A stretch of DNA of 64,000 bases, taken from positions 186,001 to 250,000 of the IMG/VR virus record IMGVR_UViG_3300028654_000001; one strand, given 5' to 3'. Shown here piece by piece: positions 12,805 through 36,680 of this stretch; the first letter of the stretch is position 1, and every line of letters begins with the position of its first letter. The translations under genes and the position numbers were made by a program. The notes under the pieces are model-generated. The model made no database searches. It was not told where the DNA came from and saw only the letters and a program-made list of their open reading frames with translations.

Positions 12805-13557
12805 ATGCTAATTCTCGGAATAATGGCGATTATACTGGTACTAACCATCTGTGTATCCACCGTTGTTTATTTTCTTGGTAAATACCACAAGGCAAAGGAT
12901 GAGGCTGAGAAACAGAGGTTGAGAGCGGTATCCGCTGAGAATTCTGCTCGAGTGGCTGCTGGACAACGACCGATACCTGGGAGTGGGGTTGATGCTAGTG
13001 AATTAGCAGCTAGGTATAGAACACCTTCCCCACCTGAACCCCCTCCAAACAGAACTGAGTCAGGAAGAGTTTCAACCCGACCAAGGACACGGCCAAGATC
13101 TCGTCAAAGTATGGAGTCCTCTTTCACTGATCTATTCAGTAGCATGAGTGAGCAGATGACCCAAGTCTTTACTGGGGTGTCTCAAGCAGTGAGCGTGGTT
13201 AGTGAGCAAGCTACCCTCTCTGTAGCCATAGCTCGGGATGCTCAATCCCTATTGAATCTTGGGTTTGTTCAAGAAAATATTCAACTTGATCAAAGTCGGA
13301 GGTCTAACTTACAACACCTGAGTCTCATTCCTGGAGTATCCTCTCGAACGGTCACTGCACTACAGAGGCTTGAAACTTCGAATCGTATAGCTGAGCACCT
13401 TAACTGGGGGCGACTAGTAATCCAATTCATGCGTATGATTGACTCTGGTGGGATAACCTTCGAGAACGAGAACAAGGCTCCTGAACCAACTACTGCTAAG
13501 GAACCAGAGCCCGAGAAGCTACCTCCAACAAGGTTTGAGCGCGAGGATGTGATATGA
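12805..13557 (+). CDS. membrane-anchored hypothetical protein with C-terminal TRFER tag
   Basis: N-terminal TM helix; ends EKLPPTRFEREDVI; shares a domain (..NR..WG..MR..SG..) with the next gene. Confidence 0.8.
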   Translation: MLILGIMAIILVLTICVSTVVYFLGKYHKAKDEAEKQRLRAVSAENSARVAAGQRPIPGSGVDASELAARYRTPSPPEPPPNRTESGRVSTRPRTRPRSRQSMESSFTDLFSSMSEQMTQVFTGVSQAVSVVSEQATLSVAIARDAQSLLNLGFVQENIQLDQSRRSNLQHLSLIPGVSSRTVTALQRLETSNRIAEHLNWGRLVIQFMRMIDSGGITFENENKAPEPTTAKEPEPEKLPPTRFEREDVI

Positions 13558-14603
13558 GACCATTGTTTGATGGATGGGCCTTGCTCGCCTTCCTGTTCTG
13601 GATGGGTTTCTGCTGGCTCCTCTGCGTACGAAGATTGTTCTGGGGTTCCTTGGTAAGGAACTTCATCACAAGTGTCTTCTTTGCAATCTCTGGTATTGCA
13701 CTCCTCTTCCTAGCAACTAGGCCTTGGATTAACACGGCCCACATCCCTCATGGAGTCAACTTTCCGCCCCCGAAGTACAATAGTGAGATCCTAAATCTTG
13801 TAGGATCAATGTGCCTGACTCTATCCCTCGCCATCAGGGTAGTAATTCAACCGATCCCTACGCCATGCCCAAGAGTCTTGGTTTCGGATGAGAACATATC
13901 TCACCTTAGAGGTACTTGGCACATCATTGATGAGGTCAGGGTTCGAGTGGGGGACATCGTAATCCTTATAAATCAGAATCGAGCTGTAGATAACGGAGCT
14001 TGGGAAGTCAGAAAGCCACCCTGGCGCAGACCTCAATCAAATCAGAAGGGCTACCATTCCTTTGGTTCTTGGTTCATTGCTAATTGTGGTAACAAGTATG
14101 CTCATACTCTATGGGTGGGATCATTATGCCGCAATGACATCATCGGTGAGGGTGAACTCGAGTGGAAGCAACTCGATCTAAACAGCAGAATACGAACTTT
14201 CGTGAGCCTCGAGATACCCTGCAGTATTGGTGAGACCGCCAAGTTCCTTCTTCGAGTAGGAGTACTTCCATACCAGATTCGATGCAATCTCCAAGAAGAA
14301 GCAGTTAGGGACCTTTTGCAAGCAGGACACATATCACCAACCTCAGTAGGTATCCTACTGCACAAGCCTGACCCTAATCGGAACTCTACTGAGTGGGGTC
14401 CTCGAGTCAAAGCGGTGATGAGGTTGCTCATTCACTCGGGTGAGTTTGAATACCCCAAGGAAGCCTACGAGAGTGCAGTAACTAATGGGTTCGAGCACCG
14501 TATGACTGAGACTGAGGTGAGGGCTGACTTCGAGGTTCGAGTTAGGAACGAAACCCCAGAACCTCGAACCCCGACTAGGTTCGAAAGAGATGAAGTGATA
14601 TGA
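13554..14603 (+). CDS. multi-TM protein with tail-fibre-like domain and TRFER tag
   Basis: Three hydrophobic segments; VGDIVILINQNRAVDNGAW; ends PTRFERDEVI. Confidence 0.75.
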   Translation: MRPLFDGWALLAFLFWMGFCWLLCVRRLFWGSLVRNFITSVFFAISGIALLFLATRPWINTAHIPHGVNFPPPKYNSEILNLVGSMCLTLSLAIRVVIQPIPTPCPRVLVSDENISHLRGTWHIIDEVRVRVGDIVILINQNRAVDNGAWEVRKPPWRRPQSNQKGYHSFGSWFIANCGNKYAHTLWVGSLCRNDIIGEGELEWKQLDLNSRIRTFVSLEIPCSIGETAKFLLRVGVLPYQIRCNLQEEAVRDLLQAGHISPTSVGILLHKPDPNRNSTEWGPRVKAVMRLLIHSGEFEYPKEAYESAVTNGFEHRMTETEVRADFEVRVRNETPEPRTPTRFERDEVI

Positions 14604-14824
14604 GAGCCTCGAAGTCTGTACTTCAGGTTATGTTATTCCTGGTCATACTGCTATTGTTGTACTTGGAATTGCAACATGTTATTTTTAGGATCAACAAAAA
14701 GTCTGTAGCTACCACCACGGTACCGACTCCATCATCTGCCAAGGTAGTACCATGCGCTCCAAGTGCTACTGCTGATGTGAGAACCCAACATGAGGATAAA
14801 ACTAGCCTATCAGAAGATACCTGA
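14600..14824 (+). CDS. small single-pass membrane protein
   Basis: Hydrophobic VMLFLVILLLLYL; ATGA coupling. Confidence 0.6.
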   Translation: MRASKSVLQVMLFLVILLLLYLELQHVIFRINKKSVATTTVPTPSSAKVVPCAPSATADVRTQHEDKTSLSEDT

Positions 14825-15425
14825 TACCCACAACTGCCCGCTCAAGAAATGCATAGCCTTTGAGAAGTACGATGGTACCAACATCCATTGGGTTGCACAG
14901 CCCGAGTGGGGTTGGGTAGACTACGGTACTCGTCGCGATCGATTCCCCTTCAATAACGGTGGAGATCAGAAGTTTGAGGAGGCTCATCCAGAACTATCTG
15001 GGGTTTCTAGGTTGTGGGACCCAGATAGTAAGCTAGAGCATTATTTGAGGGGTAACTACAGCTCTGCCCAAGAGATTGTGGTGTTCACGGAGTACTTTGG
15101 CCCTAACTCGTTTGCTGGGATGCACAAGCCTGGTGACAAAATGCAGCTGGTCATCTTTGATGTCCAGATTGATGGCAACCTTCTCCAACCGGAAGAGTTT
15201 ATCACTGCCTTCAAGGGCTTCAACATCGCTCAGGTTGTCTTCAAGGGCAAGTACTCAGGACAGTTATTTGTTGATGTCCGTAAGGGCAAGTACGGCGTGA
15301 AAGAGGGTGTAGTCGTCAAAGGTGTAGCCGACGGTAATATCTATATGGCCAAAATCAAGACGAACGAGTATCTTGAACGTCTGAAGAGTAAGTTTGGAGA
15401 TTCCTGGCAAGAATATTGGGAGTAG
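14790..15425 (+). CDS. RNA ligase-like covalent nucleotidyltransferase
   Basis: Motif I EKYDGTN, EYFG, IFDV, motif IV EGVVVK, motif V AKIK. Confidence 0.8.
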   Translation: MRIKLAYQKIPDTHNCPLKKCIAFEKYDGTNIHWVAQPEWGWVDYGTRRDRFPFNNGGDQKFEEAHPELSGVSRLWDPDSKLEHYLRGNYSSAQEIVVFTEYFGPNSFAGMHKPGDKMQLVIFDVQIDGNLLQPEEFITAFKGFNIAQVVFKGKYSGQLFVDVRKGKYGVKEGVVVKGVADGNIYMAKIKTNEYLERLKSKFGDSWQEYWE

Positions 15426-15428
15426 GTT

Positions 15429-15779
15429 ATGCCAAAGAAAAGAGCAATTCTGGTTGGAACAGCAGAGCCGTTACCAAACCCACGCCCCCGGAAGAAGGTT
15501 AATCCAACTCCCCCAAGCCCCTTTGCCCCGGTACCTACCCTAGGCCCCTATGGCACCCGGGACAACCGGGAGAAGCTGATGTTATTCCTGCGAGGGTTCA
15601 AGGATGGGGCAGCAGCCACCGCCCACCGGCACCCAACAGAGTTGCCCTACCTAAAAGGGTACGAGGAAGGCTCAAGGGCACGGGCAGGGGCCGTACGAAT
15701 CTTCTGTGACGAGATTGGACACGACCCAATGCAAGACATCCTTCGGTGTAATACCGTGGATGCTACTGAGAATAGATGA
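15429..15779 (+). CDS. hypothetical protein
   Basis: 116-aa ORF directly after the ligase. Confidence 0.6.
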   Translation: MPKKRAILVGTAEPLPNPRPRKKVNPTPPSPFAPVPTLGPYGTRDNREKLMLFLRGFKDGAAATAHRHPTELPYLKGYEEGSRARAGAVRIFCDEIGHDPMQDILRCNTVDATENR

Positions 15780-16179
15780 TAACACCCTAGATCCGTCCGA
15801 GTTCAGAGATACTTTGGCCGTTCGGTTCGCACTTCCCCAGGAATGGGAGATGGAATCACGCGAGGGTATGGCTAGGTGTGGGGTTCTGTTGCGTGACGAA
15901 GTGAGCTTCCGAAGAAACACTTGGCTTCCGTTTGACATAACGGACATGTTTGAGGCCACTGTGTTCCTTCGTCAGGCTGCCCCAGAGGGGACTGATCGTA
16001 TCCAGTCCTGGGTTTACGAGGTCTACACTTGGTACCAGTCGCGGATGATGATCCCTTGGACGGTTACCTTGATCTACCACCCTGAAGGATGGCACTTCTG
16101 CTTTGGCCCTGCAGGACTCATCCAGGGCTTGAGGGTAATTCTTCCAGACTACATTCCACTATCGGGTCCTCAGACATAA
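15760..16179 (+). CDS. hypothetical protein
   Basis: Start set at 15760: GGTGTA 15745-15750 lies 9 nt upstream. Confidence 0.65.
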   Translation: MLLRIDDNTLDPSEFRDTLAVRFALPQEWEMESREGMARCGVLLRDEVSFRRNTWLPFDITDMFEATVFLRQAAPEGTDRIQSWVYEVYTWYQSRMMIPWTVTLIYHPEGWHFCFGPAGLIQGLRVILPDYIPLSGPQT

Positions 16180-16519
16180 CTCTCTGGAACCTGGTTTGGA
16201 CCCCACGTCGGCAATAAGCTGAGATTATCATGCTAGACATCTCATCTACGTGAGTTGCTCCGTGAACTTGCTCCATATGCTGAGCAAGTGGGGACCCAAG
16301 CCGGAGTCCCCACTTGTTGCGCAGGTACCTGCCCAAGGTATGGTGAAGCTCGGTCATTGCTGTCTTCTCGTTAGCCACACTGAGAAACAACCGAGTCTCC
16401 TCATTCAGCATACCATCAATTGCTTCAATTGCTTCATCAAGAGTAGTAGGATTAGGGTGCTCAATCCGAGTTGATGCGTGTAATGGGTAATCCTTGAGAG
16501 CCTTGTACTGAGGGATCAT
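16118..16519 (-). CDS. DUF6794-like protein with TRFQR tag variant
   Basis: HHTLGRYLRNKWGL..H.DEMS..II pattern; QTRFQRVM near the C-terminus. Confidence 0.65.
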   Translation of the reverse strand: MIPQYKALKDYPLHASTRIEHPNPTTLDEAIEAIDGMLNEETRLFLSVANEKTAMTELHHTLGRYLRNKWGLRLGSPLAQHMEQVHGATHVDEMSSMIISAYCRRGVQTRFQRVMSEDPIVECSLEELPSSPG

Positions 16520-17060
16520 CTAGCACCTCAAAAGGTGGATGACTAATGGTGGTAGTTTTTAATGGTTCTTCAATAAGAGGTTCAAACGCCACTCCTGGTG
16601 GATCACAGATGCAAGCCTGAAGTCTCTCTTTACAGGTCGCACAGTAACCACTGTCGCCGATTACCCTTCGAACAGGAGGTGGCGGGGTTATCTTACTCCG
16701 AACCATCTTAGGTAGGGGTTCTCCACAGTACGGACAGAACCTCGCCGGGGGCCGATCGAGGTAGTATCTCTGAGTACCATCCATGAACCACTTGAGTAGC
16801 TCACTGGAAGCATGAACCCTCCAATCACCATCCGCCGTATTGGAGTCGTAGTCCTTTGGAACGTAGAACTTCGTGTCGAGCCCTGAGTCGACTTCGAAGG
16901 TAATGACCGGGTACTTCTGAGCCGCCTCGCAACAGGTTGGTCTGATAGTCTTGCTGATGGCTTCCCAGACTCGCTGATCCACTAAGTGTTCCAGCTCCTG
17001 CTCTTCTTCCGTACTTAGCTCTCTTCGACCACGAAGTTCTTGAATTCTTTCGAAAGACAT
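16461..17060 (-). CDS. Cys-rich hypothetical protein
   Basis: CC, FCPYCG, CATC..CIC; start 17060 supported by a GGTGTA motif 12 nt upstream. Confidence 0.7.
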   Translation of the reverse strand: MSFERIQELRGRRELSTEEEQELEHLVDQRVWEAISKTIRPTCCEAAQKYPVITFEVDSGLDTKFYVPKDYDSNTADGDWRVHASSELLKWFMDGTQRYYLDRPPARFCPYCGEPLPKMVRSKITPPPPVRRVIGDSGYCATCKERLQACICDPPGVAFEPLIEEPLKTTTISHPPFEVLDDPSVQGSQGLPITRINSD

Positions 17061-17078
17061 GGTGTAACAAGGTACACC

Positions 17079-17537
17079 ATGATCCACGAGAAGTCGCCTG
17101 TAGTTTGGGAAAAACGATGGTTTGTTGTCGAGGTTGACGGGGATCTAGTCAAGAAGCAGTTCGAGTCTCACTTTATACAGGATCAGAACGGGTACTCAGT
17201 CAAACTGGGGTGTGTGAGGGACTTCGTGCCCGCCAGCAAGTGTTACGAAACTGAGCAAGCGGCCGACTCTAAGATTGCTGAATTAAAGAGCCTGATGGGT
17301 GTCCGCGAGGAGTTGGCCGAGTATGCTCACAACTGCTGGTCTCGCTGGATGAGGCACCTGTTCGGAAAGGGTGCCAAGAACCAGGATGGGTCACTCACGC
17401 TGCCCAGAGAGGTTGTGGAGCGGTGGCTACGCCAGATGAACACTCCTTACCAAGAGCTCACCGCTGAAGACAGAGTCTCTGATCAGAACGAAGCCCACAA
17501 GATTCTGGACCTAGTGGCAAAGAATGCCTCAATCTAG
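17079..17537 (+). CDS. hypothetical protein with RyR-like domain
   Basis: LAEYAH..W..WM...TPY.EL...D..SD pattern; GGTGTA 12 nt upstream. Confidence 0.65.
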   Translation: MIHEKSPVVWEKRWFVVEVDGDLVKKQFESHFIQDQNGYSVKLGCVRDFVPASKCYETEQAADSKIAELKSLMGVREELAEYAHNCWSRWMRHLFGKGAKNQDGSLTLPREVVERWLRQMNTPYQELTAEDRVSDQNEAHKILDLVAKNASI

Positions 17538-17539
17538 GG

Positions 17540-18058
17540 TCATCTGTGTTGAGACTTCATTAGCTTGACGGTAGCATTGAAGGCTACCAACCAAAACTTG
17601 CTTTTACCAGCCCTCTTGGACTTCACAAGTTGAGATTTGTTGAGCTCTACTGGACTCAAGTCAAGAGCTTCTCGTATGCCATCCACTGTAGCATCAAATT
17701 CGGCTAAGCTTTCCGGAGTAGCTTCGTCGCTGACGGTATACTGTTGAAGGGTTGCCGTTGTCTCCAGGTCACCAATAGTTATGAATGTCTTTAGCTTACC
17801 CCCAATTCGATCTGTGGTGATATTAGCCTGACCTCGATAGTCCCCTGTTGCCTTCTTCTCGTCATCTGTACTATGGAGTTGATACTTCAGAGGCGGTACG
17901 TCGAAGTTCAGCTTTGAGAGATCGTACGCAGAGGATAGGTAATCAAAGTCCTCAGACAGCTTAAACTTCATCAACAGCCCATTCTCAATCACAATTCTTT
18001 GAAGTGAAGAGGCGGCGGTAAACCTACGAACGACGCGGGCTATGATTTCGAGATCCAT
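17540..18058 (-). CDS. hypothetical protein with N-terminal RVxxRF motif
   Basis: MDLEIIARVVRRFTAA. Confidence 0.7.
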   Translation of the reverse strand: MDLEIIARVVRRFTAASSLQRIVIENGLLMKFKLSEDFDYLSSAYDLSKLNFDVPPLKYQLHSTDDEKKATGDYRGQANITTDRIGGKLKTFITIGDLETTATLQQYTVSDEATPESLAEFDATVDGIREALDLSPVELNKSQLVKSKRAGKSKFWLVAFNATVKLMKSQHR

Positions 18059-18109
18059 GGTTTGACCTAGTGGCTCAGGTAGTCCCGAACCACTAGGATC
18101 ATCAAAGGA

Positions 18110-18505: not shown

Positions 18506-18547
18506 TGGGCAGGCCCCGTCAAGAACTTTTTGGTGTACTTAGGACGT

Positions 18548-18925
18548 ATGAAGCCGGGTGAGGTAATCGCAGAAGGTCTACTCGGCTTCTATGCCTGTGC
18601 TGTCCTCAACGATCTCGAGAAGATGGTGGTCTTACCCTCTGTTGTACTCGAGTCCGTCAAGGACAACTCAGGGGTAACCCCCGAATGGCCCCTTGGGGTC
18701 TATGTCCTGTTCACTGAGGATGGGGTCCTTCTTGGAATACACGGTAAGAACAAAGAGGGGGAGATACTCGACAGGTATAGTTTCTTTGACCTCGACGAGG
18801 ACACAATCCCGGATCTTGGTGAAGATATCTGGAACCTGTGGAAGGTCCTTCGTGAGGCCTCTGATGAGTTGGTCGAGGCCAACTATCAGGCTTTACTGAA
18901 GCAGACTCTGGAGTCTGAAAATTGA
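18548..18925 (+). CDS. hypothetical acidic protein
   Basis: Start set at 18548: GGTGTA 18532-18537 lies 10 nt upstream. Confidence 0.7.
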   Translation: MKPGEVIAEGLLGFYACAVLNDLEKMVVLPSVVLESVKDNSGVTPEWPLGVYVLFTEDGVLLGIHGKNKEGEILDRYSFFDLDEDTIPDLGEDIWNLWKVLREASDELVEANYQALLKQTLESEN

Positions 18926-19392
18926 TGCTTACAGTAGCTGACGTCATACCGACTGCAGAGGTTGGACAGTATTGGGTACATACCTTTCCCCTGTACATGT
19001 TTCGAGTTATAGCCGTTGATGTACAACAGTGGCAGTTCACCCTTGTCACTTGGATTGTCGGAGGGGTCCCTGAAGAGGATAGTTACTATATCGGGTATGA
19101 TACTTTTAAGGGATGCCGTAGACTTCACAACTCTGTAGTAATTGATCCCCATGCACTTAGCCTCAAGGAGATCCCTCGAACTGGAGACATTTTAGTTTTC
19201 CCAAGTGGGGAGTTGGTTTTCGTGGTTACCGATGGATCCCTAGTAACCCTGTACCATGATGGGGTTGTACCCAAAGACCCAGCTGTACTTTCCAAGCTTA
19301 AGCTATTTCAACGTGGCCCAGTCGACCCGAACCTAAAACCCACAACCAGATTCGAACGAGTGTTAGGTGATCATGCCCTTGACCCAGACTGA
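18922..19392 (+). CDS. hypothetical protein with TRFER tag
   Basis: Ends KPTTRFERVLGDHALDPD; paralogous to the next gene. Confidence 0.75.
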   Translation: MMLTVADVIPTAEVGQYWVHTFPLYMFRVIAVDVQQWQFTLVTWIVGGVPEEDSYYIGYDTFKGCRRLHNSVVIDPHALSLKEIPRTGDILVFPSGELVFVVTDGSLVTLYHDGVVPKDPAVLSKLKLFQRGPVDPNLKPTTRFERVLGDHALDPD

Positions 19393-19840
19393 TATATTCC
19401 CGGTGATGCAACCCGATCAGTGGTGGGCTCAAACCAGAACCCTTGGATTAGTACATATCTTGGCCATAGATCAACAGGTTGGCCCAGAGAGATGCTTTGA
19501 AATGGAGGTTTGGGCACCTGATGAACTACCTGGGAATAAGTGGCATTGGAATCGGGGACTTGGGCCTCCAAATGAATCACTCCTCTGGTTCAGGTCCAAG
19601 GTGGATGTCAAGCATCCAATTGAAAAGTATAGGATTGGAACGGTCTACATTTCAGCGGTGAACCACCAGCTATTCTTCTTAGCTATCATCCACGGAGAGG
19701 TTTGGATACTCGCCGATTGGGAGGTTACGGACACAGATCTTCAGAAGTCCTATGTGTTTCAACCAGCCCAGAAGGATCCAACTGAGTTGCATGACACTAG
19801 GTTGGAAAGGGTTCTGAACGAGGAGCACTCACCGACTTGA
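19367..19840 (+). CDS. hypothetical protein with TRLER tag
   Basis: LTQTDIFP..DQWW..LAID resembles the previous gene; ends DTRLERVLNEEHSPT. Confidence 0.75.
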   Translation: MIMPLTQTDIFPVMQPDQWWAQTRTLGLVHILAIDQQVGPERCFEMEVWAPDELPGNKWHWNRGLGPPNESLLWFRSKVDVKHPIEKYRIGTVYISAVNHQLFFLAIIHGEVWILADWEVTDTDLQKSYVFQPAQKDPTELHDTRLERVLNEEHSPT

Positions 19841-20082
19841 CACCTGTAGTTATAAGTGGTACTGCCACCTACATGGATATACCCCAAAGAGGCGTTCACC
19901 ACCTTCTCCACACGCTGTGGACAAAAGCCGTAGGTACTGAGAATTACAACAAGAATGAGTGGAAGCAGCTGGCTGCTTACCTGTATGCTCTTATGGCCGA
20001 CCCTATGGCTTCCCAGAATATCATTGAAGTCGACAGGATACTTCAACCACCGACGCGGTTCGAGCGGGAGCCGGTGATCTAA
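19837..20082 (+). CDS. small protein with TRFER tag
   Basis: LHTLWTKAVG..Y.K.EW core; ends PPTRFEREPVI. Confidence 0.7.
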   Translation: MTPVVISGTATYMDIPQRGVHHLLHTLWTKAVGTENYNKNEWKQLAAYLYALMADPMASQNIIEVDRILQPPTRFEREPVI

Positions 20083-24443: not shown

Positions 24444-24767
24444 TTAGGAGTTATTGATCCGATCAAACCGAGTAGGTGGCTTATCCGTATACATAGTGGA
24501 CTGCGTGGTCCTTGCCACGTCTACGGAGGGTGGCTCTTCCTCCTCAACCTCTTCCTCCTCCACCTCAGGTTCCACTTGGTTGATGATCATAGGTTGTTGC
24601 GCAAAATTTGCGAGTAAGGCTTTCCACCCAAGAAGAATGTGGTTGGAGATAGTAGCTAGCAGATTGTAGGTAGATCCAATAACAACAATCACTATAAATG
24701 TAGCTAATCCTGGGTTGGCATGAACCCATATCCAGACCTGACTCATCACGGGGACAGTATACCCCAA
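24444..24767 (-). CDS. small membrane protein with TRFDR tag
   Basis: TM segment, acidic linker, ends KPPTRFDRINNS. Confidence 0.7.
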   Translation of the reverse strand: MGYTVPVMSQVWIWVHANPGLATFIVIVVIGSTYNLLATISNHILLGWKALLANFAQQPMIINQVEPEVEEEEVEEEEPPSVDVARTTQSTMYTDKPPTRFDRINNS

Positions 24768-26803: not shown

Positions 26804-28042
26804 ATGACTACAGCTCTTGCACGACCTAAGTTTTCGTGGAGGAAAGTTCTCGCTTTCGCGACTGATATCCTCCAAAAGCTTCCGAATCGAAGTGATGGGG
26901 TTCTGGCTATCATTGTCAAGTCTCTTTCCATTGTTGACTCATTCAACGTCCAAATGAACAAGGGTAAGTCAACTGCCCTGTTCGACTTCTTCGGCGATCT
27001 AGACTTGATTGAGGTAACCAATGCCCAGTTTGTCAGCTTGTTCTACTCAACAGGACTGAGGGACAGCTTCAAGATCATCAAATTCGAGATGGGGGATTAT
27101 GTAGAGATCGTGAGAGCCGAACACACTGGGATCGGTACTCTCTACTTCGTTGAGTGGCACTGGGGAAGTAAACCAGAACCTTCTGCTGACTTCTGGCATA
27201 CCAAGGGGTTCAACTTTGAGAAAGCTCTCGAGGTACTTTGGGACAAGTTCCACGGACGCCTCCATCTAGGGATCACCCAAGACCGAAGTGGGGAGCTCAA
27301 GTCAACCTATTCGGAGATTCCCGAGCCAAAAGATCCACTCTTAGGGAAGACCGCGGCCGTCCTTGACGAGTTCAAGGAGCAACACCTACTCTACATGAAG
27401 GATAAGATCCCGAGAACCTATCTGTTCTGCGGAAAGCAGGGGATCGGTAAGACATGCTTCTGTCTTCGACTCTCTCAACTCACCGGCGGTCGAACTCTGC
27501 GCATTGATGCCTGTGGGATCACCTCGGTTGGAGTCAAGGACCTAGACTTCATCATCAATGGTCTGTGCCCTAACTTCCTAATCGTGGATGACATCGACCG
27601 AGCTCCGGAATTGGAGAAGTCCCTCCCAACCCTGTTCTCAATCCTCTCAGACTTCAAGTGCAAGCACCCCAATGTCACCGTGGCCTTGACCATCAATGAC
27701 ATCACTAAACTTGACCCAGCCCTTCTGAGGCCAGGTCGTATTGATGAGATCATCGAGTTTGAACCACCCGATGAAGAAGAGCGTAGTCAAATTCTTGAGG
27801 GGTATCTGAAAGAGTTCGAGGTAGCCACTGAGGTAGACCTGAAGAGGATCGCTGAGTCTACTGAGGGGTTAACCGCCGCCTACCTTCGAGAAGTAGCCCT
27901 TCAACTCCGGTATCGCCCCCAAGAGAGAGTATTGAAGGTCATCAACCGGATGAACGATCTTGCCAGCGCCAAAGAGGAAAAGAAGAAAGAAACTAAGTGT
28001 AGCGAACCCGTTGGAAACTCGGCCCGCGCGACTCCGGTGTAA
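26804..28042 (+). CDS. AAA+ ATPase
   Basis: Walker A GKQGIGKT, Walker B IVDDID, SRH LDPALLRPGRID. Confidence 0.9.
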   Translation: MTTALARPKFSWRKVLAFATDILQKLPNRSDGVLAIIVKSLSIVDSFNVQMNKGKSTALFDFFGDLDLIEVTNAQFVSLFYSTGLRDSFKIIKFEMGDYVEIVRAEHTGIGTLYFVEWHWGSKPEPSADFWHTKGFNFEKALEVLWDKFHGRLHLGITQDRSGELKSTYSEIPEPKDPLLGKTAAVLDEFKEQHLLYMKDKIPRTYLFCGKQGIGKTCFCLRLSQLTGGRTLRIDACGITSVGVKDLDFIINGLCPNFLIVDDIDRAPELEKSLPTLFSILSDFKCKHPNVTVALTINDITKLDPALLRPGRIDEIIEFEPPDEEERSQILEGYLKEFEVATEVDLKRIAESTEGLTAAYLREVALQLRYRPQERVLKVINRMNDLASAKEEKKKETKCSEPVGNSARATPV

Positions 28043-28050
28043 TTAGGGCC

Positions 28051-28344
28051 ATGACTCCCGATAAGATTATGACGGCTTGTCATAAGTACAAGGAACTCCT
28101 CTTTGGATACCAGCCCATTAGCTTCCCAACAGCAGAGATGATCCCAGCCCTTGAAAGGGATTGCCGAGACTACAACAGGGAAAGTAGTCTTCAACACGCC
28201 ATGTGGATGTGCACTGCCATAGAGGAGCAGGTGAAAAATGGTAAGTGCTCCAAAGCCGAACGCTGGCTATGCTTCATTCAAGGGGTTCTCTGGATGAACG
28301 GGATCTGCAGCATCGATGAGATGAGAGACGATAATCGGGATTAG
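28051..28344 (+). CDS. hypothetical phage protein
   Basis: HAMWM..KAERWLCFIQGVL pattern; GGTGTA 9 nt upstream. Confidence 0.75.
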   Translation: MTPDKIMTACHKYKELLFGYQPISFPTAEMIPALERDCRDYNRESSLQHAMWMCTAIEEQVKNGKCSKAERWLCFIQGVLWMNGICSIDEMRDDNRD

Positions 28345-29567
28345 GTAGCAGCTGCTATAGCTGATTTCCTGCTTTTACCCCTACGAATTAGGGAGATATT
28401 AGAGTGATGAGTCTTGTATATCTTTGCAAGGTGAGTTCCCGGTAAGGAACTGGCTAGTATCTCCTGAACCTCATTATCTGTAAGTTTGGTGGCATAGTGG
28501 GTTTCACCACGAGGTCGACTCTCAGGGTGCAAACGAGACCCAGAGCGATCCCCACGTGGGACTCGCTCTGGGTTGGTAATAGAACTATGTCTCCCTTTCC
28601 TAGACATATCTATCATATTGTCTAGTTGAGTCCCCTCAAATAAGTGGTCTGGGTTGGCACAGCTCCTATTATCACACTTGTGGAGCGCAAACATTCCTGG
28701 GAGCAACTTACGCCCAAGCTTGGCTTCTAGTACTATACTGGTGACCCTACGTGTCTTTCTATTCACCCCTATCAAACCATACCTGTCATTACTTGAACCA
28801 GTACAAGTCCAACAACGGCCTAATTCCTCACGTAGTGTAGGCCCATTAATGTTCAGGTGCTGGATCAAAACTTCCGCAATTCGCATTCCGTGGAAGTATG
28901 CTGATTGTTCTTTCAAAACTTGAAGCTCCGCTGACACAACTACTTGCGGATTCAGAAGGTGCTTCCAAGTTAAACCCTTACAGATCTTTTGAATACAACT
29001 CTTGTTTACTCCAAACTTAGTGGCAAGCCACTGATAGCTCTCATGACTAATACGAATTTCCTGAATCATGTCTGCAGTGAGCTTAGAGTTCGAATTACCA
29101 GACCCACCCCTACTTTGAAGCACTTGCCTACAACACCTGCCCTTGGTGACCTTATCCACCATATTGTCTCTTGTTGTGCCTTCGAACAAGTGACTCGGTT
29201 CAAAACATGAGGGGTTGTCGCACCTGTGACATGAGAGCATACCAGAAGTAAGAGGGCGTTTTAGCTTGGCTTCCAATACCAAACGACTAGCCTGGTAGTG
29301 ATTTCTACCGATCATTACCCGGTAACGCTCACCGATCCGACTACTAGACTTTTCTAAGCACGGGCCTAAATCCTGTCGTACAACTACCTCAATCAGATTG
29401 TAAGTGATCCGATCCGCCAGAGCACGACCATGATAGATCATGGTCATATTGTAAATGTTTTGGATACTCATTGGCTCTAATAGATAGACATTAAATGAAG
29501 TATATGGTTTAGGGGTACCTAAACCATATACCACACTGCCGATTTTACTACAATGCTTCGGTAACAA
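28341..29567 (-). CDS. HNH endonuclease with tandem HNH modules and HTH-like tails
   Basis: CHRCDNPSCFEPSHL..N..D and LHKCDNRSCANPDHL..N..D; true start probably downstream (~29471-29447). Confidence 0.88.
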   Translation of the reverse strand: MLPKHCSKIGSVVYGLGTPKPYTSFNVYLLEPMSIQNIYNMTMIYHGRALADRITYNLIEVVVRQDLGPCLEKSSSRIGERYRVMIGRNHYQASRLVLEAKLKRPLTSGMLSCHRCDNPSCFEPSHLFEGTTRDNMVDKVTKGRCCRQVLQSRGGSGNSNSKLTADMIQEIRISHESYQWLATKFGVNKSCIQKICKGLTWKHLLNPQVVVSAELQVLKEQSAYFHGMRIAEVLIQHLNINGPTLREELGRCWTCTGSSNDRYGLIGVNRKTRRVTSIVLEAKLGRKLLPGMFALHKCDNRSCANPDHLFEGTQLDNMIDMSRKGRHSSITNPERVPRGDRSGSRLHPESRPRGETHYATKLTDNEVQEILASSLPGTHLAKIYKTHHSNISLIRRGKSRKSAIAAAT

Positions 29568-30561: not shown

Positions 30562-30595
30562 ACCCCAGAGGGGTAATAAGTGGATTAGTATCTGA

Positions 30596-31156: not shown

Positions 31157-31185
31157 TCCATGGCATTTTGATAAGAATATTAGTA

Positions 31186-31434: not shown

Positions 31435-31951
31435 GCTCAATGTGGGTTGAGGATAAACCCCTTGCATAGTCGGTCTTGATCAGATGATCCTTCAAGTAAT
31501 CCATATCATCATCATCGTCAAGAATGACAAAATGATCGACTGGATTCCGGTCCATCCACTCTTGGATCTCGTGCCCTCGACAGGTATGGTCCCACCGATC
31601 TAGGTTGGTGGCCGTCATATCAACGATATCGCCTTGAAACCCCTTGAACTTCAGTATCCTTTCAAGGGCTTCCAAAGGATGACTGTATCTCCACGAAGAT
31701 GAGATCACTACTTTAGCCCCAGACTTAGCTAGGATCTCATTAAGAACAACGACTGCCTTTGTGTCGATGCTGAGGATACTATTTAGGATTGTCGACCGAG
31801 GACAAGGTGGATCAAAGAGATATCCAAGGTCACACGCTAATTCGAACTCAACTGGATTCGGAGTGGTGTCCGCTTTGATAGTCTTTAGGTGCTTTGATGA
31901 GTTGAGTACCCCGTCCAGATCAAGAAATAGTATACTAGTGTACTGTGCCAT
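31406..31951 (-). CDS. HAD-superfamily phosphatase (Swiss-Army-knife RNA-repair HAD type)
   Basis: FLDLDGVLN, ISSSWR, RGHEI..W, FVILDD. Confidence 0.88.
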   Translation of the reverse strand: MAQYTSILFLDLDGVLNSSKHLKTIKADTTPNPVEFELACDLGYLFDPPCPRSTILNSILSIDTKAVVVLNEILAKSGAKVVISSSWRYSHPLEALERILKFKGFQGDIVDMTATNLDRWDHTCRGHEIQEWMDRNPVDHFVILDDDDDMDYLKDHLIKTDYARGLSSTHIEPTLKVLALP

Positions 31952-32003
31952 CTAGTAATCAAGTACACCTCACATCAGAAAGTTTTTATGACAAACACTT
32001 GGC

Positions 32004-32141
32004 ATGAAGACTATAATTGTTACAGTGCTACTTTCCTGCTCTTTACTTAGTTGCTCAAAAACCAAAGCACCTGAAAGCCCAGTAACCGCTCAAACACAAA
32101 GGTCTGATGCTGATGCTGGTGCTGACGCTGACGTTGAGTAA
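32004..32141 (+). CDS. small lipoprotein (45 aa, below the ORF-track cutoff)
   Basis: MKTIIVTVLLSCSLLS-C signal peptide and lipobox. Confidence 0.6.
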   Translation: MKTIIVTVLLSCSLLSCSKTKAPESPVTAQTQRSDADAGADADVE

Positions 32142-32147
32142 TAAACA

Positions 32148-32184
32148 ATCGGGTCAGGGGAGCCACAACATCCCCCCTGACCCG
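32148..32184. terminator. GC-rich hairpin between convergent genes
   Basis: tcgggtcagggg...cccctgacccga inverted repeat. Confidence 0.6.
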
Positions 32185-32195
32185 ACCGAGAGCTT

Positions 32196-32564
32196 CTAGC
32201 GTCGACGAGAAGATCTACTACGAGCCTTCGGCTCTGCCTTTGCTCTTGGGGCCACAGGAAGTTTTACGGCTCTCTTCTGATGAGACCGTCTTGGGGAAAC
32301 TTCAGCCTCTGGTTCAGTTGTTGGAGCAAATGGAATCTTTGGAGTTCGTCGAGCTATAGAAACTGGATCAGTACCAATATTGACTCGAGATCCAGCTTTA
32401 CTACCTCTACGTTCCTCCCCTATGAGCCTAGCTATCTGAATGGTTAGAGCAACCGGATCCAAGACATTTGGAGAACTTACGGGACTAATCTTTCGCTCCC
32501 GATATACGTCCACAGCTTCGGCTAAATCTTGGGAAACTTGTTGCGCTTCTCGACTCAACGGCAT
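32196..32564 (-). CDS. hypothetical protein with basic C-terminus
   Basis: AGGAGG SD before Met 32564; ends RSRSSRRR. Confidence 0.65.
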   Translation of the reverse strand: MPLSREAQQVSQDLAEAVDVYRERKISPVSSPNVLDPVALTIQIARLIGEERRGSKAGSRVNIGTDPVSIARRTPKIPFAPTTEPEAEVSPRRSHQKRAVKLPVAPRAKAEPKARSRSSRRR

Positions 32565-32668
32565 GATTCCTCCTACTATACTCTTTAGAATCCGGTGGAA
32601 ACTACACCAGAAGCACCGAGTTTGCATCAAGTTTTTGCAAGACCACCAAAAAGGTGTAAGCTTAGCTC

Positions 32669-33076
32669 GTGGCTTCCCCTCTTTTCAACTCTCAGAATCG
32701 CCCTCGGGCGGCTTCCCACTTAGCCGAGATTGACTTCGGCCGACTGGAAAAGTCTCGTAAAGAGAGCGGGAACGTCATCATAACCTACGAGACTTGCCCG
32801 GGTATTTTCCTACTGGCCTATGAGCAGGTTCATAATAGGAGCATCACATTTGCTCCGTTCCCAGTACCGAAGTACTGGGAACGACATGTGACCAGGGTTC
32901 ACTTACTGGTACCCGCTCCAGGCTCAATCAATCTCAAGAATGGGTCCCAAGTTACAACTATACCGGAGGATAGTGTAGCCCATGTTCTAGGGGCCATCCA
33001 GTATGTGCTAGAACAAGGTGGGTTCCAGGTAGTACTAGGTGCTCCAACTCGATTTGAACGAGCCGACGTGATTTAG
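32669..33076 (+). CDS. hypothetical protein with TRFER tag
   Basis: Ends APTRFERADVI; GGTGTA 10 nt upstream. Confidence 0.75.
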   Translation: MASPLFNSQNRPRAASHLAEIDFGRLEKSRKESGNVIITYETCPGIFLLAYEQVHNRSITFAPFPVPKYWERHVTRVHLLVPAPGSINLKNGSQVTTIPEDSVAHVLGAIQYVLEQGGFQVVLGAPTRFERADVI

Positions 33077-33598
33077 ACGAATAATCTTACGGACTGCCAT
33101 GAGAATCTTCCCCAACCGATTGACTCCAGTCTTTGAGCTTCCCCATCCCCAATAGGGATCGTGGACAGTACTCTCGATAATTGGACTTTCTCCGGTGCTC
33201 AAAAGAACCAACTGGCAGCTCTCATTCTGATCGAACTTGGATAGAACTACCCCGAACATTGCCCAATCTTTGACAAGGTTAATGACCTTGCTCGGACCAC
33301 GTCCATCATCTACAAGGTTATCGAAGTCCGGGTGCTCGTTTGTCCTGATAAATGGAGAATCCCAATCTTCCCGTAAGGGAAGGGTCCTATCTCGTCCGAT
33401 GGTGGCTGCAGCCATAGGATTGGCAGCGTTATGAATCCGATCAACTAAGTCCATCCGATGTGGGAAGAACTTCATTGCCTGAAAAGAAGCTTCTGAGGTC
33501 TTCCACTTACGACCCATAAACATAAGGCCATGCCTTGAAAAGTTTGAGAAACATCCGTAGGGTATCTCCTTTGGTGAATAAAATAGTACTAGTTCCAT
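33035..33598 (-). CDS. NADAR (YbiA-like) family protein
   Basis: YGCFSNF, TSEASFQAMKF, LREDW, KF.Q, LLSTG, DPYWG..G.NRLGKILM.VR. Confidence 0.9.
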   Translation of the reverse strand: MELVLFYSPKEIPYGCFSNFSRHGLMFMGRKWKTSEASFQAMKFFPHRMDLVDRIHNAANPMAAATIGRDRTLPLREDWDSPFIRTNEHPDFDNLVDDGRGPSKVINLVKDWAMFGVVLSKFDQNESCQLVLLSTGESPIIESTVHDPYWGWGSSKTGVNRLGKILMAVRKIIRLNHVGSFKSSWST

Positions 33599-33790
33599 AT
33601 TTTTGAGTACACCGAGTAGAAAGTTGTTTACTTCAGCCTACCGTTGATGTACACCTAGACCTTAGGCGGCTCTAGAGAGGACCTTCTGCTCCGCCCCCCT
33701 CAAGACAGAGGGTCTCCTAGGGCCGTCAATTATTTTGGTATTTAGAGGGATACATTTGTCCAGAAATGAGTGTACCCTGATTTAGGTAAA

Positions 33791-34276
33791 ATGCTCTGCG
33801 TCGGATTATTCGGAACTTGTGACAAGCATAAATGGAGAGATCCATTTATGGAGAAGTACGATGAGCTGGGAATCCCCTACTTCAATCCGATGGTCGACAA
33901 TTGGCACGCGGGGCTTGTACCACTTGAAGCTCAGCACTTGGCCGAAGATGAGATCATCATGTTCCCGATCCTCGGGTGGTCCTATGCTGAGGGCAGCCTT
34001 TCAGAGATGGGTTTTGGACCATTGAAGGCTATGCGCCAGAACAGTAATCGAAGCTTTGTGTACTTCATCGAGACAGTTCTCCACGAGAGGTTAACTGATC
34101 CAGAGCGATGTGAGGCATCACTCCGAGCTAGGGAGCTCCTCATTGGTCACCTAAAAGAGTTGGGTGCACCCAACATCTACCTTGTGCAGAGTCTCGAGCA
34201 AGCTCTCGAGACCACCATTGATCTCTATGGTGTACACAAGAAGATGAGTGAGTTGCACAATGCCTCAGCTGGATAG
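33791..34276 (+). CDS. nucleoside deoxyribosyltransferase-like protein
   Basis: GLFGTC..WR..YFNP.V..W..E..SLSEMG Rossmannoid pattern. Confidence 0.55.
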   Translation: MLCVGLFGTCDKHKWRDPFMEKYDELGIPYFNPMVDNWHAGLVPLEAQHLAEDEIIMFPILGWSYAEGSLSEMGFGPLKAMRQNSNRSFVYFIETVLHERLTDPERCEASLRARELLIGHLKELGAPNIYLVQSLEQALETTIDLYGVHKKMSELHNASAG

Positions 34277-34377
34277 ACTAGGTCAAGACCTAGAAGATCA
34301 GCGCCAACTCTGTAAACGCCCGATGACTTAAGAGACAGCGCGGACGAAACGGATAAGGCCTCGGTGTACTTGGGGGA

Positions 34378-34845
34378 GTGGCAACCCCTAGCATCGACGA
34401 TCCTTACCGTATACTAGCTTCATACGCTCTCCGTAAGCCACCTGAGGTTCTACCTAGCTCTGTTATTTTCGAGGCTAGGAAGAGGGCAAAGCAAGTATGT
34501 GGTTATGACCCACCACTATTGGATAGATTTCTCAGCTTCTATACAGACGTTGAACCTCACATAAGTGTCACAGCTGAGGATGCCGTACGGGCTGAGAAAC
34601 TACTTCGGTGTATCTGGAGGGGTGATGTCGATGAGGCCTATGATCCAACCCCTGGTACCTACCAGCATTTCAAGGGAAACTTCTACACAGTACAATCGAT
34701 AGCCAAGCTCCTACAAGGGCCAAAAGAAGAGCTGGCTGTTGTGTACGGAAATGATGATGGAACGTTTGTTAGACCCCTACGAGAGTGGGTTGAGTTAGTA
34801 CTTTGGCCTGATGGTGAATACCATCCTAGATTCAAGAGACAGTAG
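34378..34845 (+). CDS. DUF1653-domain protein
   Basis: GTYQHFKGNFYTV..VVY..FVRPL..PRF. Confidence 0.8.
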   Translation: MATPSIDDPYRILASYALRKPPEVLPSSVIFEARKRAKQVCGYDPPLLDRFLSFYTDVEPHISVTAEDAVRAEKLLRCIWRGDVDEAYDPTPGTYQHFKGNFYTVQSIAKLLQGPKEELAVVYGNDDGTFVRPLREWVELVLWPDGEYHPRFKRQ

Positions 34846-34847
34846 TT

Positions 34848-35597
34848 ATGCCAGCTGGAGCCTTTTGGCGCCTTCAGTACAGAGATGGCCTAGATCACAG
34901 AATTCAAGCTCGGGCTGATAGGCAAAGGTTTGCCCAAGACAGGAACGTCCTCACAGCCATTACTCGCTACCACGAGGGCGCTTTCGTTCTGGAGGTTCAG
35001 CTTGTCGATGATGCGGAGTCTACCTTCGATGGGAGTCTTCACGAGCTCTACAATCGACAGCAGTCCATTCGAAACCCACCGCCAGTGACTAGGACCATCT
35101 CCTCCTTAGCTAGATGGGGAAACACACCTGATTCAAATGGGATGGTCATAGATCCCCAAGTCAGGGAGAACATCATCAGTCAGTACATCCAAAGCTCAGG
35201 GGGTCGTCAACGATTGGCCCAGGCGATGGTAGCCCCTCTCCGAACACGACTAGACTACTCGGGGATGGCAAGACGGGTATTCATGGTTGAACCTCTCCAA
35301 GGAGGGGCCTTGCCCACCTACGACAAGGACATGGTCAGTGACTTCAACCCGCCCGACTGGGTCGACGCTGGCACGTGGGTCAAGAGTGACGATAAATACG
35401 CGATTATTGTGGCCACCGAGCCGAAGAATACCGAAAGCCTACCCTTCAACTCGGCTATAGTTGAATACCAGGTCTGGAGGGATTACGGGCCTCCAAAGAG
35501 GCTTGACGCGGAAACCTTCTGTAAGTACTGGTTACCATCCGAGACTCCAGCAGAGCCTAGAACCCGATTCGAACGAATTCTGATGGACGATGATTGA
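34848..35597 (+). CDS. mosaic protein: capsid-like segment + PxW domain + TRFER tag
   Basis: IISQYI..GRQRLAQAMVAPLR.RLDY...RRVFMVEPL..GALPTYDKD; ends PRTRFERILMDDD. Confidence 0.75.
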   Translation: MPAGAFWRLQYRDGLDHRIQARADRQRFAQDRNVLTAITRYHEGAFVLEVQLVDDAESTFDGSLHELYNRQQSIRNPPPVTRTISSLARWGNTPDSNGMVIDPQVRENIISQYIQSSGGRQRLAQAMVAPLRTRLDYSGMARRVFMVEPLQGGALPTYDKDMVSDFNPPDWVDAGTWVKSDDKYAIIVATEPKNTESLPFNSAIVEYQVWRDYGPPKRLDAETFCKYWLPSETPAEPRTRFERILMDDD

Positions 35598-35931
35598 AAC
35601 CCCACTTATCGATCTACCTACCGTGAGTAAGGGAAGACGGTTGGTTCAGGTCATCCTGGCCATACTAAAAACCCATCCCGAGGGGATCACAGAGGTTGGT
35701 CTCCACAAGGATGACTTCTGGATCTTGCTGGACATGCTCGGGTATTCATGTTCAACTGCAGTCGTGACCCTGCACAAGGTCAAGGTGTTTACTGATAATA
35801 CCAAGCAGGATATGCTTAGTATCCGAGCAAGTGGTGGTAGTTCCAAGGTCTTTATCGAGGATATCTGGGTGATCCTACATCCAGAAGAGGAAACCCGACT
35901 TCACCGCGTACTGAGGGAGGGAGTAATTTGA
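35590..35931 (+). CDS. hypothetical protein with TRLHR tag variant
   Basis: Ends ETRLHRVLREGVI. Confidence 0.7.
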   Translation: MIETPLIDLPTVSKGRRLVQVILAILKTHPEGITEVGLHKDDFWILLDMLGYSCSTAVVTLHKVKVFTDNTKQDMLSIRASGGSSKVFIEDIWVILHPEEETRLHRVLREGVI

Positions 35932-36297
35932 ATGATGAGGGTTCTGATCATTGATTCATACGCCAAGGAAGAAGCAGACAAGGTAGTCAAGTTTGCGTTC
36001 CGCCCAGAGAATCTTTACCGTCCAGGGACTACCGCCAGGATCCCAGGAAATGTGAGGAAGCATATCCTTGTACTCGGGGACTACAAGATAGTCTTCTCGT
36101 TGACACGAGATCCTCAAACTGGTGAGGTTTTCAGACACCTCTCAATGTCGGTTCCAACTCTAGGGGCCTTCCCACACCCTGCAGCGATAACCGAGGTCAT
36201 CGACCTATTTGGATTCAAGGGGGGTTTGTGTAACTGTCAACTCGATGCAAATAGAGTTGATAATTGCATCACAGTAGCTCAGAACCTCGAATCTTAG
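35932..36297 (+). CDS. hypothetical protein
   Basis: VFS..RHLSMSVP..PHP pattern. Confidence 0.75.
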   Translation: MMRVLIIDSYAKEEADKVVKFAFRPENLYRPGTTARIPGNVRKHILVLGDYKIVFSLTRDPQTGEVFRHLSMSVPTLGAFPHPAAITEVIDLFGFKGGLCNCQLDANRVDNCITVAQNLES

Positions 36298-36680
36298 ATC
36301 ACATCCTCCCTCTCAAATCGAGTTGGAGGGAGTTTTTCTTCTACCACCTTCTCTCTTTTGCGACTTAGGACCTGTGGCTTTGGGGCTGGACGCCACTTAT
36401 CTAGGACATCTTTTAACCAACGAGAGATGGCTGACTTCGGGTTACCTTCACGTTCGAAGTGGATGTAGTTGTTCCCACCTGAAACTACCCGTATACCTGT
36501 TATTACGAACACAGGCATATCATAGGGTGTAGGGTTTTCGGGCAGGTTACGACAAACCCAATCAGGTCCTTCAGGGAATAGTGAGGTAATCTTGGATGGT
36601 GGAAGTGGGATTATCTTACTCCCCACTGCAACCCAACTATCATCCTTTGGAGCTTTCCAGGGGTCTTTGATCCGAGGCAT
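36294..36680 (-). CDS. PxW-domain protein with TRFER tag
   Basis: Ends EKLPPTRFEREDVI. Confidence 0.75.
   Translation of the reverse strand: MPRIKDPWKAPKDDSWVAVGSKIIPLPPSKITSLFPEGPDWVCRNLPENPTPYDMPVFVITGIRVVSGGNNYIHFEREGNPKSAISRWLKDVLDKWRPAPKPQVLSRKREKVVEEKLPPTRFEREDVI

Follow-up and report, generated by a model that had tools for sequence, protein, structure and literature searches.

A terminal peptide motif recurring on dozens of proteins of an uncultured soil megaphage is under selection as protein

The window analyzed here is a 64,000-nucleotide stretch that corresponds to bases 186001 to 250000 of a single 512,571-bp contig from an IMG/VR virus record (hereafter, G000), and it encodes a series of proteins that end in, or in a few cases contain, a short peptide of the type PTRFEREDVI, which we refer to as the tag. 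The contig has direct terminal repeats, a CheckV completeness of 100% and a guanine-plus-cytosine (GC) content of 49%, and it encodes 42 tRNAs in all and a transfer-messenger RNA (tmRNA), together with HNH endonucleases, NAMPT, a PurZ-like adenylosuccinate synthetase and a CCA-adding enzyme. Near-identical DNA was found in rhizosphere and soil metagenomes, and the contig therefore represents an uncultured soil megaphage. The window had no match among GenBank phages by blastn, and searches of GenBank phage proteins returned only distant AAA homologues (best, Myxococcus phage Mx1, 30%) and uninformative ClpX matches.

Two open reading frames (ORFs) of the window share a 14-residue tail. The 250-amino-acid (aa) protein encoded at 12805-13557 (plus strand), which has an N-terminal transmembrane helix, and the 128-aa protein encoded at 36294-36680 (minus strand) have bodies with no similarity by BLASTP, and translation confirmed that both end in EKLPPTRFEREDVI. 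As the preliminary description had stated, the two tails are encoded by divergent codons: 7 of the 14 codons are changed, all of them synonymously (GAG/GAA, AAG/AAA, CTA/CTC, ACA/ACT, AGG/CGA, CGC/AGG and ATA/ATC), which corresponds to 9 of 42 nucleotides (nt), and the stop codons differ too (TGA and TAA, respectively). The 60 nt upstream and downstream of the paired tails are 17 to 18% identical, that is, unrelated. The 14-residue identity is exact in this pair, but the unit that is kept is shorter than the 14 residues originally proposed. Orthologue tails lack the EKL stretch (...SERPPPTRFEREDVI, ...PDQIPPTRFEREDVI and ...KEELPPTRFEREDVI), and this part of the match is therefore best read as a coincidence inside Glu/Lys/Pro-rich linkers; the conserved unit is only the last 10 to 11 residues, P-P-T-R-F-E-R-E-D-V-I.

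To describe the tag across the 512-kb genome, its six-frame translation was searched for [ST]RF[ED]R, which gave 65 matches, 53 of them preceded by 40 or more open codons and no more than 12 residues from a stop codon. In the reversed genome and in five triplet shuffles, the corresponding numbers were 1 to 4 and 0, which excludes a chance origin of the tag. The curated carriers are 55 ORFs out of approximately 676 called genes (~8%), with a median length of 135 aa, and the copies are found on both strands, always in frame. Their common core is P-[ST]-R-F-[ED]-R, in which the Thr/Ser position (position 1 of the motif) is T in 52 copies and S in 2. Two classes were distinguished. Class A (~39 copies) reads P-T-R-F-E-R-[ILV]-L-x-[DE]-[DE] and is followed by 4 to 11 residues before the stop, whereas class B (~15 copies) reads P-T-R-F-E-R-[ED]-[DP]-V-[IL] with the stop immediately after it, so that exactly four residues always separate the second Arg from the stop, in G000 as well as in two relatives described below (G002 and G006). 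The position of class A is flexible, since it is internal in two ORFs of the window (41143-41718 and 60657-61118) and doubled in an 81-aa protein (57801-58046). The 15 residues that precede the tag contain 10.9% Glu and 10.8% Pro, versus 6.6% and 5.3% genome-wide.

Within the window, class B tails (coordinates of all tails include the stop codon) close both ORFs of the matched pair, with PTRFEREDVI at 13525-13557 and at 36294-36326; the orthologue of the former in the related locus L004 retains the tag. The stop of 12805-13557 overlaps the start of the next gene (ATGA, 13554-13557), which suggests translational coupling of two tagged membrane-protein genes, as the second one (13554-14603, plus) encodes a 349-aa protein with two N-terminal hydrophobic helices and the tail PTRFERDEVI at 14571-14603. 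Further class B tails were found in an 81-aa ORF (19837-20082, plus; PTRFEREPVI at 20050-20082) and in a 135-aa ORF (32669-33076, plus; PTRFERADVI at 33044-33076), whose orthologues, at 31 to 42% identity, retain PTRFERPDVI or PSRFDRRPVI. A class-B-like tail, PSRFERDIGI (39579-39611), ends a 291-aa protein with a zinc-ribbon-like C-terminal part (38736-39611, plus), and PTRFDRINNS (24444-24476) ends a 107-aa protein with a hydrophobic N-terminal half (24444-24767, minus), the orthologue of which has the tail HPTRFDRINNS.

Class A tails end ORFs of 249 aa (34848-35597, plus; RTRFERILMDDD at 35559-35597), 346 aa (36714-37754, plus; RTRFERILDDTDELYPL at 37701-37754) and 164 aa (46348-46842, minus; PTRFDRINALLDEEDLI at 46348-46401), and a class A-like tail, TTRFERVLGDHALDPD, lies at 19342-19392 in a 156-aa ORF (18922-19392, plus). 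The internal copies are RPTRFERILRENE, at approximately 41503-41541 and 65 residues from the C terminus of a 191-aa protein (41143-41718, plus), and RTRFERILDPEPED, which starts at 60981 and lies 39 residues from the end of a 153-aa Cys-rich protein (60657-61118, plus); the former is retained in the orthologue of the relative G007 and the latter in the orthologues of locus L023 and of G002. A motif variant, PRTRFDHILEDDDDD (approximately 55144-55188), is also present between strands beta2 and beta3 of a 347-aa Ser/Thr-kinase-like protein (54283-55326, minus). The 81-aa low-complexity protein at 57801-58046 (minus) carries two class A copies, PTRFDRILDTDE and, at its C terminus, STRFDRILRDDED, and consists of little else; a relative at L023 has a version with one tag. 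This protein could be a bivalent ligand of a tag receptor or a competitor for it.

Next, we asked at which level the tag is conserved. Across 54 copies in G000, the first two positions of the T-R-F-E-R codons each carry approximately 2 bits of information, apart from the first base of the two Arg codons (approximately 1 bit), and the third position drops to the level that degeneracy allows. The information follows a strict 3-base periodicity, and no conservation was observed 5' of the tag or beyond the stop in these copies. All six Arg codons are in use at both Arg positions, with CGN and AGR mixed, in line with the codon mixing already noticed in the preliminary description, and the tag codons are split evenly for Phe (TTC/TTT, 28/30) and Glu (GAG/GAA, 25/26). 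The comparison of tag and linker that had been proposed, of the type used for ratios of nonsynonymous to synonymous change, was carried out on 27 orthologue pairs with related phage contigs at 65 to 83% nucleotide identity, and synonymous change was scored among identical residues only. Residues were changed or gapped at 44% of the positions of the protein body and at 50% of those of the 12-residue linker, but at only 9% in the six-residue core and 25% in the four residues after it; the synonymous changes were 44%, 52%, 53% and 32%, respectively. The core is thus under strong purifying selection on its amino acids, at an ordinary synonymous rate and with no detectable constraint on the DNA. 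Overall, the tail is a short linear peptide motif that is selected as protein, as the preliminary description had argued, and the deep relative G002 described below supports the same conclusion.

A nucleic-acid element at the 3' ends of genes, acting in DNA or RNA (a terminator, a recombination site or a mobile cassette) with the peptide as a by-product, would account for the location of the tags at gene ends and perhaps for a mild excess of the Thr codon ACT (33 of 54 copies). We give this explanation almost no credence, because synonymous sites vary no less than elsewhere, both Arg positions mix CGN with AGR codons and the flanks are unconserved; in addition, copies occur in frame on both strands, the window matched no Rfam family, and the peptide is retained in a relative with a GC content of 58%. 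Repeated DNA elements such as miniature inverted-repeat transposable elements, repetitive extragenic palindromes, terminators or recombination cassettes were also rejected, since the frame-independent nucleotide conservation into the flanks that they entail was not seen. Conservation running through third positions and flanks, named in the preliminary description as the mark of a DNA element, was looked for specifically and did not appear, and with free third positions and unrelated flanks neither a DNA repeat nor a recent duplication explains the shared tails. This case also shows that comparing codons is enough, even with raw sequence only, to tell selection on a peptide apart from a DNA repeat.

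The tag is not confined to G000. Scans of IMG/VR with degenerate patterns located it in very few contigs, which come from five samples and are syntenic with G000 at 65 to 83% nucleotide identity, and the tag is retained in orthologues of just 27 to 45% protein identity. A deep relative, G002 (407 kb, with terminal repeats and 58% GC), was reached via its ClpX; its approximately 25 copies, which include both classes, often replace T by S, the latter being common at position 1, and E by D, as in the C-terminal LSRFDREDVV and PSRFERILNED. Among 12 orthologue pairs of G000 and G002 (27 to 50% identity), a recognizable tag was present in 10, with the class unchanged in 9 and switched in 1; the remaining tags were degenerate in one case and apparently lost in the other. 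Another relative, the 228-kb fragment G006, has approximately 55 copies. The class A pattern gave two to three matches in each of G001, G003, G004 and G011, and P-T-R-F-[DE]-R, for which G001, G003 and G004 were scanned, gave one to three, with no match in the controls of either scan; no class B match was found in the pattern scans of these four contigs. In the cultured 490-kb Agrobacterium phage Atu_ph07, which encodes a ClpX, there was no enrichment of the tag (12 matches versus 11 in the control). By these sequence comparisons, the tag spans a clade of huge soil phages in which the class is mostly kept between orthologues, and such clade-wide conservation implies a conserved partner.

The carriers are mostly small, fast-evolving and lineage-specific proteins. 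By BLASTP, the 55 tagged ORFs fall into 46 components, the largest with 5 members and 39 of them singletons. Approximately 18 small class A proteins, possibly paralogues that have diverged very far, have a common CxxC...C(x2)H...C pattern; the count of independent families would then be below 46, though still large. A Pfam scan at E values of 0.001 or less left 50 of the 55 without a family, and PHROG scans likewise left almost all of them unassigned. The tag is thus a modular addition, present on membrane proteins as well: three carriers, including that of 12805-13557, have N-terminal membrane helices. Another carrier is a RecA/KaiC-like ATPase whose gene adjoins ThyX, and one has a weak immunoglobulin-like or virion-like match. 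In a tagged 158-aa protein (G000 10102-10578, read as L027:10102-10578, minus), the N-terminal 60 residues resemble the Pfam domain of Tad2 (Thoeris anti-defence 2), with a match of 22.5 bits, slightly under the cut-off of 25.

Most class A genes lie within 20 to 200 kb of G000. In this region, each 20-kb bin from 20 to 180 kb contains 0 to 3 genes with a G002 orthologue out of 27 to 42, and the 180- to 200-kb bin contains 7 out of 33, which indicates that the tag is mainly found on a fast-turning accessory pool, plus about a dozen conserved proteins. Tagged genes are almost all located outside a block of long co-oriented genes at 300 to 460 kb, where a lone copy lies near 318 kb. At that position (approximately G000 316928-318145, read as L040:10928-12145), an isolated segment coding for ...APTRFEREEVI and a stop lies immediately 3' of a LAGLIDADG-like ORF, and a 62-aa ORF that resembles ribbon-helix-helix proteins is located upstream; insertion of an intron or a homing endonuclease may have split a tagged gene here. 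A promoter-like word shared 5' of the tagged genes was also searched for, and nothing convincing was found.

Considering these properties, we think it rather probable, on the evidence of sequence, that the tag is a docking peptide and that all tagged proteins are recognized by one common partner. The tag would be displayed at the end of the Pro/Glu-rich linker and would recruit its carriers to that partner. T/S-x-x-E is the classical helix N-capping box, and S, T and D are all helix N-cap residues; the presence of such a box in P-[ST]-x-x-[ED] suggests that the peptide is probably a short amphipathic helix. In class A, this helix would have F, I and L on one face (i, i+3 and i+4), with the two Arg residues beside them and the acidic run after them. 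In class B, where the distance to the stop is fixed, the free C terminus is probably read as well. Display on a flexible linker, tolerance of position, doubling in a tag-only protein and the use of three different sites in the kinase family (see below) are together the signature of a short linear docking motif with one partner. We infer from them that the tag binds a single hub, while any proposal as to which protein acts as the hub, and as to the fate of the tagged proteins, is speculative; our best guess would be a chaperone or an AAA+ hand-over machine, with a J-domain protein, a Bcs1-like AAA ATPase (AAA-2) and the phage ClpX as candidates.

The J-domain protein (466 aa) has a J-domain with the HPD motif and a 320-aa C-domain; its gene starts at 63465 (plus), runs to the end of the window at 64000 and continues to G000 250865 (read as L037:465-1865). 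It is among only 58 proteins common to G000, G002 and G006, and it is full-length in every other tag-bearing record checked (G001, G002, G003, G004, G006 and G011), whereas the copy in the tag-free fragment G005 is diverged and partial. The phage encodes no Hsp70, so host DnaK would be the effector of this protein. An N-terminal helix of the J-protein, FE[SD]RYARLLLSMS, is conserved and tag-like, with D as a third residue type at position 1. Searches with the C-domain found no structural neighbour in the PDB or in AlphaFold DB clusters, and an atlas search was also uninformative. A further observation comes from the kinase family, which comprises the protein of 54283-55326 and 113 homologues from huge phages: 56 of them carry the motif, generalized as [ST]-x-[WFY]-[ED]-x-[IL]-[ILM]-acidic, and 34 an N-terminal J-domain, with 5 having both by a crude pattern match. 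Depending on the lineage, the motif is located at the N terminus or in an insert, either that between beta2 and beta3 or one in the activation loop. Such an alternation of motif and J-domain would fit a tag that recruits the J-protein in trans.

AAA-2 is a 399-aa protein encoded at 39639-40838 (plus), directly downstream of the tagged gene 38736-39611, an arrangement also seen in G002; in both genomes, AAA-2 is flanked by conserved tagged genes. Its AlphaFold2 model has a predicted local distance difference test (pLDDT) score of 89.5, and the top Foldseek matches are Bcs1 and Bacillus subtilis YjoB. The pore loop is degenerate, the protein ends in approximately 27 consecutive Asp/Glu-rich residues, and there is no membrane anchor. 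On this confident model, AAA-2 is a soluble Bcs1-like AAA ATPase, and it is a candidate receptor. It is present in the tag-bearing G000, G002, G004, G006, G007 and G011 and in none of the fragments G001, G003 and G005. The phage ClpX is encoded outside the window, at G000 277071-279446 (L038:9071-11446, minus), and scores above the NCBIfam equivalog cut-off (442 versus 359 bits). It contains a Hint-type intein near the Walker A motif and keeps the MGF (ClpP-docking) and GYVG (pore) loops, with the RKH specificity loop replaced. The phage has no ClpP gene, nor was a PDZ domain found when both were searched for as readers of the C-terminal tail. Another AAA protein of the window, AAA-1 (412-aa classical AAA ATPase, 26804-28042, plus), is missing from the deep relative G002 despite the tags of the latter, which makes it a weak receptor candidate. 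Complex prediction with AAA-2, the ClpX zinc-binding domain, the N-domain of a third AAA protein and the class B tail gave no answer and counts neither as support nor as refutation.

Several observations weigh against a single docking partner or against its candidates. The J-protein C-domain has no recognizable peptide-binding fold. On the kinase tree, the anticorrelation of J-domain and motif amounts to only three to five independent contrasts (sign test, P = 1), and in one genome, G014, a J-fused kinase coexists with a stand-alone J-protein; the 2-by-2 comparison at genome level is not clean. The Rosetta-stone argument from kinases with a J-domain versus kinases with the motif was therefore set aside: its raw counts are striking, but the independent events are few. 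The AAA-2 family, made up of phage and metagenome proteins, is very large, with 1,023 representatives at E values below 1e-30, and no tags were found within 10 kb on either side of distant homologues, some of whose neighbourhoods were too short to judge. ClpX is present in the tag-free Atu_ph07. Finally, the partner could be a host protein.

Alternatively, the tag might be a degron that times the unfolding and degradation of phage proteins, mainly the lineage-specific accessory ones, through the phage ClpX in partnership with host ClpP or through a different AAA+ protease, in which case the 81-aa two-tag protein would be a competitor or regulator. We consider this doubtful. A true ClpX with MGF and GYVG loops, an altered RKH loop and no phage ClpP would suit it, as would the strictly C-terminal position of class B, which is shared by many ClpX degrons, the tagged membrane proteins, which an AAA+ protease could handle, and the concentration of class A genes in the accessory region at 20 to 200 kb. 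Known ClpX signals, namely the ssrA tag, MuA-type C-motif 2 and the XB tail of SspB, which binds the ClpX zinc-binding domain, are likewise short C-terminal peptides for an AAA+ unfoldase. However, tails such as ...EDVI or ...ILxDD resemble neither the LAA-like nor the basic-plus-hydrophobic type (LAA, RRKKAI of MuA, LRVVK); class A is acidic-ended and also internal or near N termini, which argues against a classical pore-engaged degron; ~8% of the proteome is tagged, including conserved core proteins such as the RecA/KaiC-like ATPase and the kinase; and Atu_ph07 has ClpX in the absence of tags.

Distinctly improbable, in our view, is a sorting signal that would send proteins to a compartment or a particle, as in procapsid loading for co-injection or in import or translocation through the Bcs1-like AAA. 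The cargo-loading peptides of encapsulins and the C-terminal tail of the maturation protease of HK97 are motifs that target cargo to a shell, and the likeness lies in the following: a motif of approximately 10 residues at the extreme C terminus, borne by a flexible linker on unrelated proteins and read by one receptor surface, in the setting of HK97-fold viruses. Here too a C-terminal peptide on a flexible linker is attached to many unrelated cargos, a Tad2-like anti-defence carrier would profit from early delivery, many class A proteins look like small folded zinc-binding domains, and AAA-2 resembles Bcs1, a translocase of folded proteins. Nevertheless, the cargo is not uniformly soluble, since at least three carriers have N-terminal membrane helices, contrary to capsid loading, and a kinase and a RecA-like ATPase are tagged. 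Tag genes do not lie beside capsid genes and are nearly all outside the 300- to 460-kb block, which is known only as a run of long co-oriented genes; the sequence does not resemble known cargo peptides; two tag classes exist, one of which tolerates internal sites; and AAA-2 lacks a membrane anchor. A modification site, with the Ser/Thr phosphorylated by the phage kinase-like protein or an Arg modified, so that the tag would be a substrate or phospho-switch, is very improbable. Position 1 is nearly always T or S, and the kinase-like protein itself bears a motif variant, but in the G002 J-protein the tag-like segment carries D there, and the capping box accounts for S, T and D alike, so phosphorylation is not needed. 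Moreover, the motif moves between loops in the kinase family, as a client motif would, and the Pkinase match of the 54283-55326 protein falls under the Pfam cut-off.

Cells, encapsulins and a few phage head proteins offer well-known examples of a terminal peptide that is common to unrelated proteins and addresses them to one receptor, and several such systems can be compared with the tag. Sliding-clamp motifs (the PCNA-interacting peptide [PIP] box and the QL[SD]LF motif of the beta-clamp) likewise place one short motif with aromatic and aliphatic residues, usually at a disordered terminus, on many proteins that share one hub; they differ in consensus and in their carriers, as tagged proteins are mostly small ORFans, some of them membrane proteins, rather than replication and repair enzymes. 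The C-terminal EEVD motif of Hsp70 and Hsp90 is read by tetratricopeptide repeat co-chaperones and class B J-proteins; class B tags also end in two acidic residues, V and a hydrophobic residue with a free carboxylate, and a phage J-domain protein co-occurs with them, but the direction is reversed, with the clients carrying the tail, and EDVI is not EEVD. In J-domain client recruitment, there is a parallel in the kinase homologues that bear either J-domain or motif, a comparison with little phylogenetic power. Peroxisomal targeting signal 1 (SKL) and KDEL are proteome-wide terminal codes with one receptor, and the generalized [WFY]-[ED]-x-[IL] plus acidic residues formally fits the LC3-interacting region or Atg8-interacting motif ([WFY]-x-x-[ILV] with acidic flanks), which is a resemblance of pattern only; no Atg8-like, Pex5-like or comparable receptor was found here. 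Other signals were discarded on anatomy. A twin-arginine translocation signal is N-terminal ([ST]-R-R-x-F-L-K plus an h-region), whereas the tag is C-terminal, its Arg pair is not adjacent and no h-region follows; for LPXTG and PEP-CTERM-type sorting signals, nothing hydrophobic follows the motif and most carriers lack a signal peptide; the clamp motifs (PIP box, Q-x-x-[ILM]-x-x-[FY][FY]; QL[SD]LF) do not match P-[ST]-R-F-[ED]-R; and the N-terminal capsid-targeting sequence of phage T4 was ruled out in the same way.

Full-text literature searches with motif strings and related concepts returned accidental string matches only, with no precedent, and to our knowledge no tag covering 8% of a proteome is known for any phage. 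The principle of shared terminal tags is known, but no tag that covers ~8% of a phage proteome, has two conserved variants and extends across a clade of huge soil phages turned up in the literature searched. Should the tag prove to be a docking code, it would give access to ~55 ORFans of a megaphage, and to another ~55 in a relative, through a single handle, would predict an essential and readily found hub protein, would suggest that huge phages may integrate fast-turning accessory genes by means of a 10-residue tail, and could provide a portable tag for biotechnology. A bolder version, which we regard as unlikely and offer tentatively, is a proteome-wide addressing code in which two terminal peptides on dozens of accessory proteins and a few core enzymes route them to a phage-encoded machine. 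That machine would be either a J-domain adaptor that takes over the Hsp70 of the host or a Bcs1-like protein that translocates or unfolds folded proteins; the accessory cargos would be anti-defence, zinc-ribbon and membrane proteins, and a new gene would become a client by gaining a tag.

Other features of the window and of the contig were also recorded. Two free-standing HNH homing-endonuclease genes lie on the minus strand at 10429-11442 and 28341-29567, the second of which adjoins AAA-1 and has no G002 orthologue. A nucleotide and NAD module occupies 53139-60183 (minus), with a cytidylyltransferase/NMNAT-like protein (53139-54278), the PurZ-like adenylosuccinate synthetase (55314-56693; PHROG family "2-aminooxy adenylosuccinate synthetase," E value of 3e-75), NAMPT (58054-59442) and a Nudix-NrtR regulator (59452-60183), all on the minus strand. 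Given the PurZ-like gene, it may be asked whether the genome contains modified adenine. Elsewhere in the contig, G000 291481-294426 (L039:4481-7426, minus) encodes a 981-aa classical AAA ATPase (PAN/Cdc48-like) with a LAGLIDADG intein, and its G002 orthologue has approximately 525 aa, consistent with an intein-free form. The tRNA array at G000 457935-479593 contains 41 tRNAs and the tmRNA, which has the unusual tag peptide VADLPRDSLGSG. Apart from this array, G000 498602-498674 encodes a tRNA with a CUA, amber-reading anticodon, called as tRNA-Pyl by ARAGORN.

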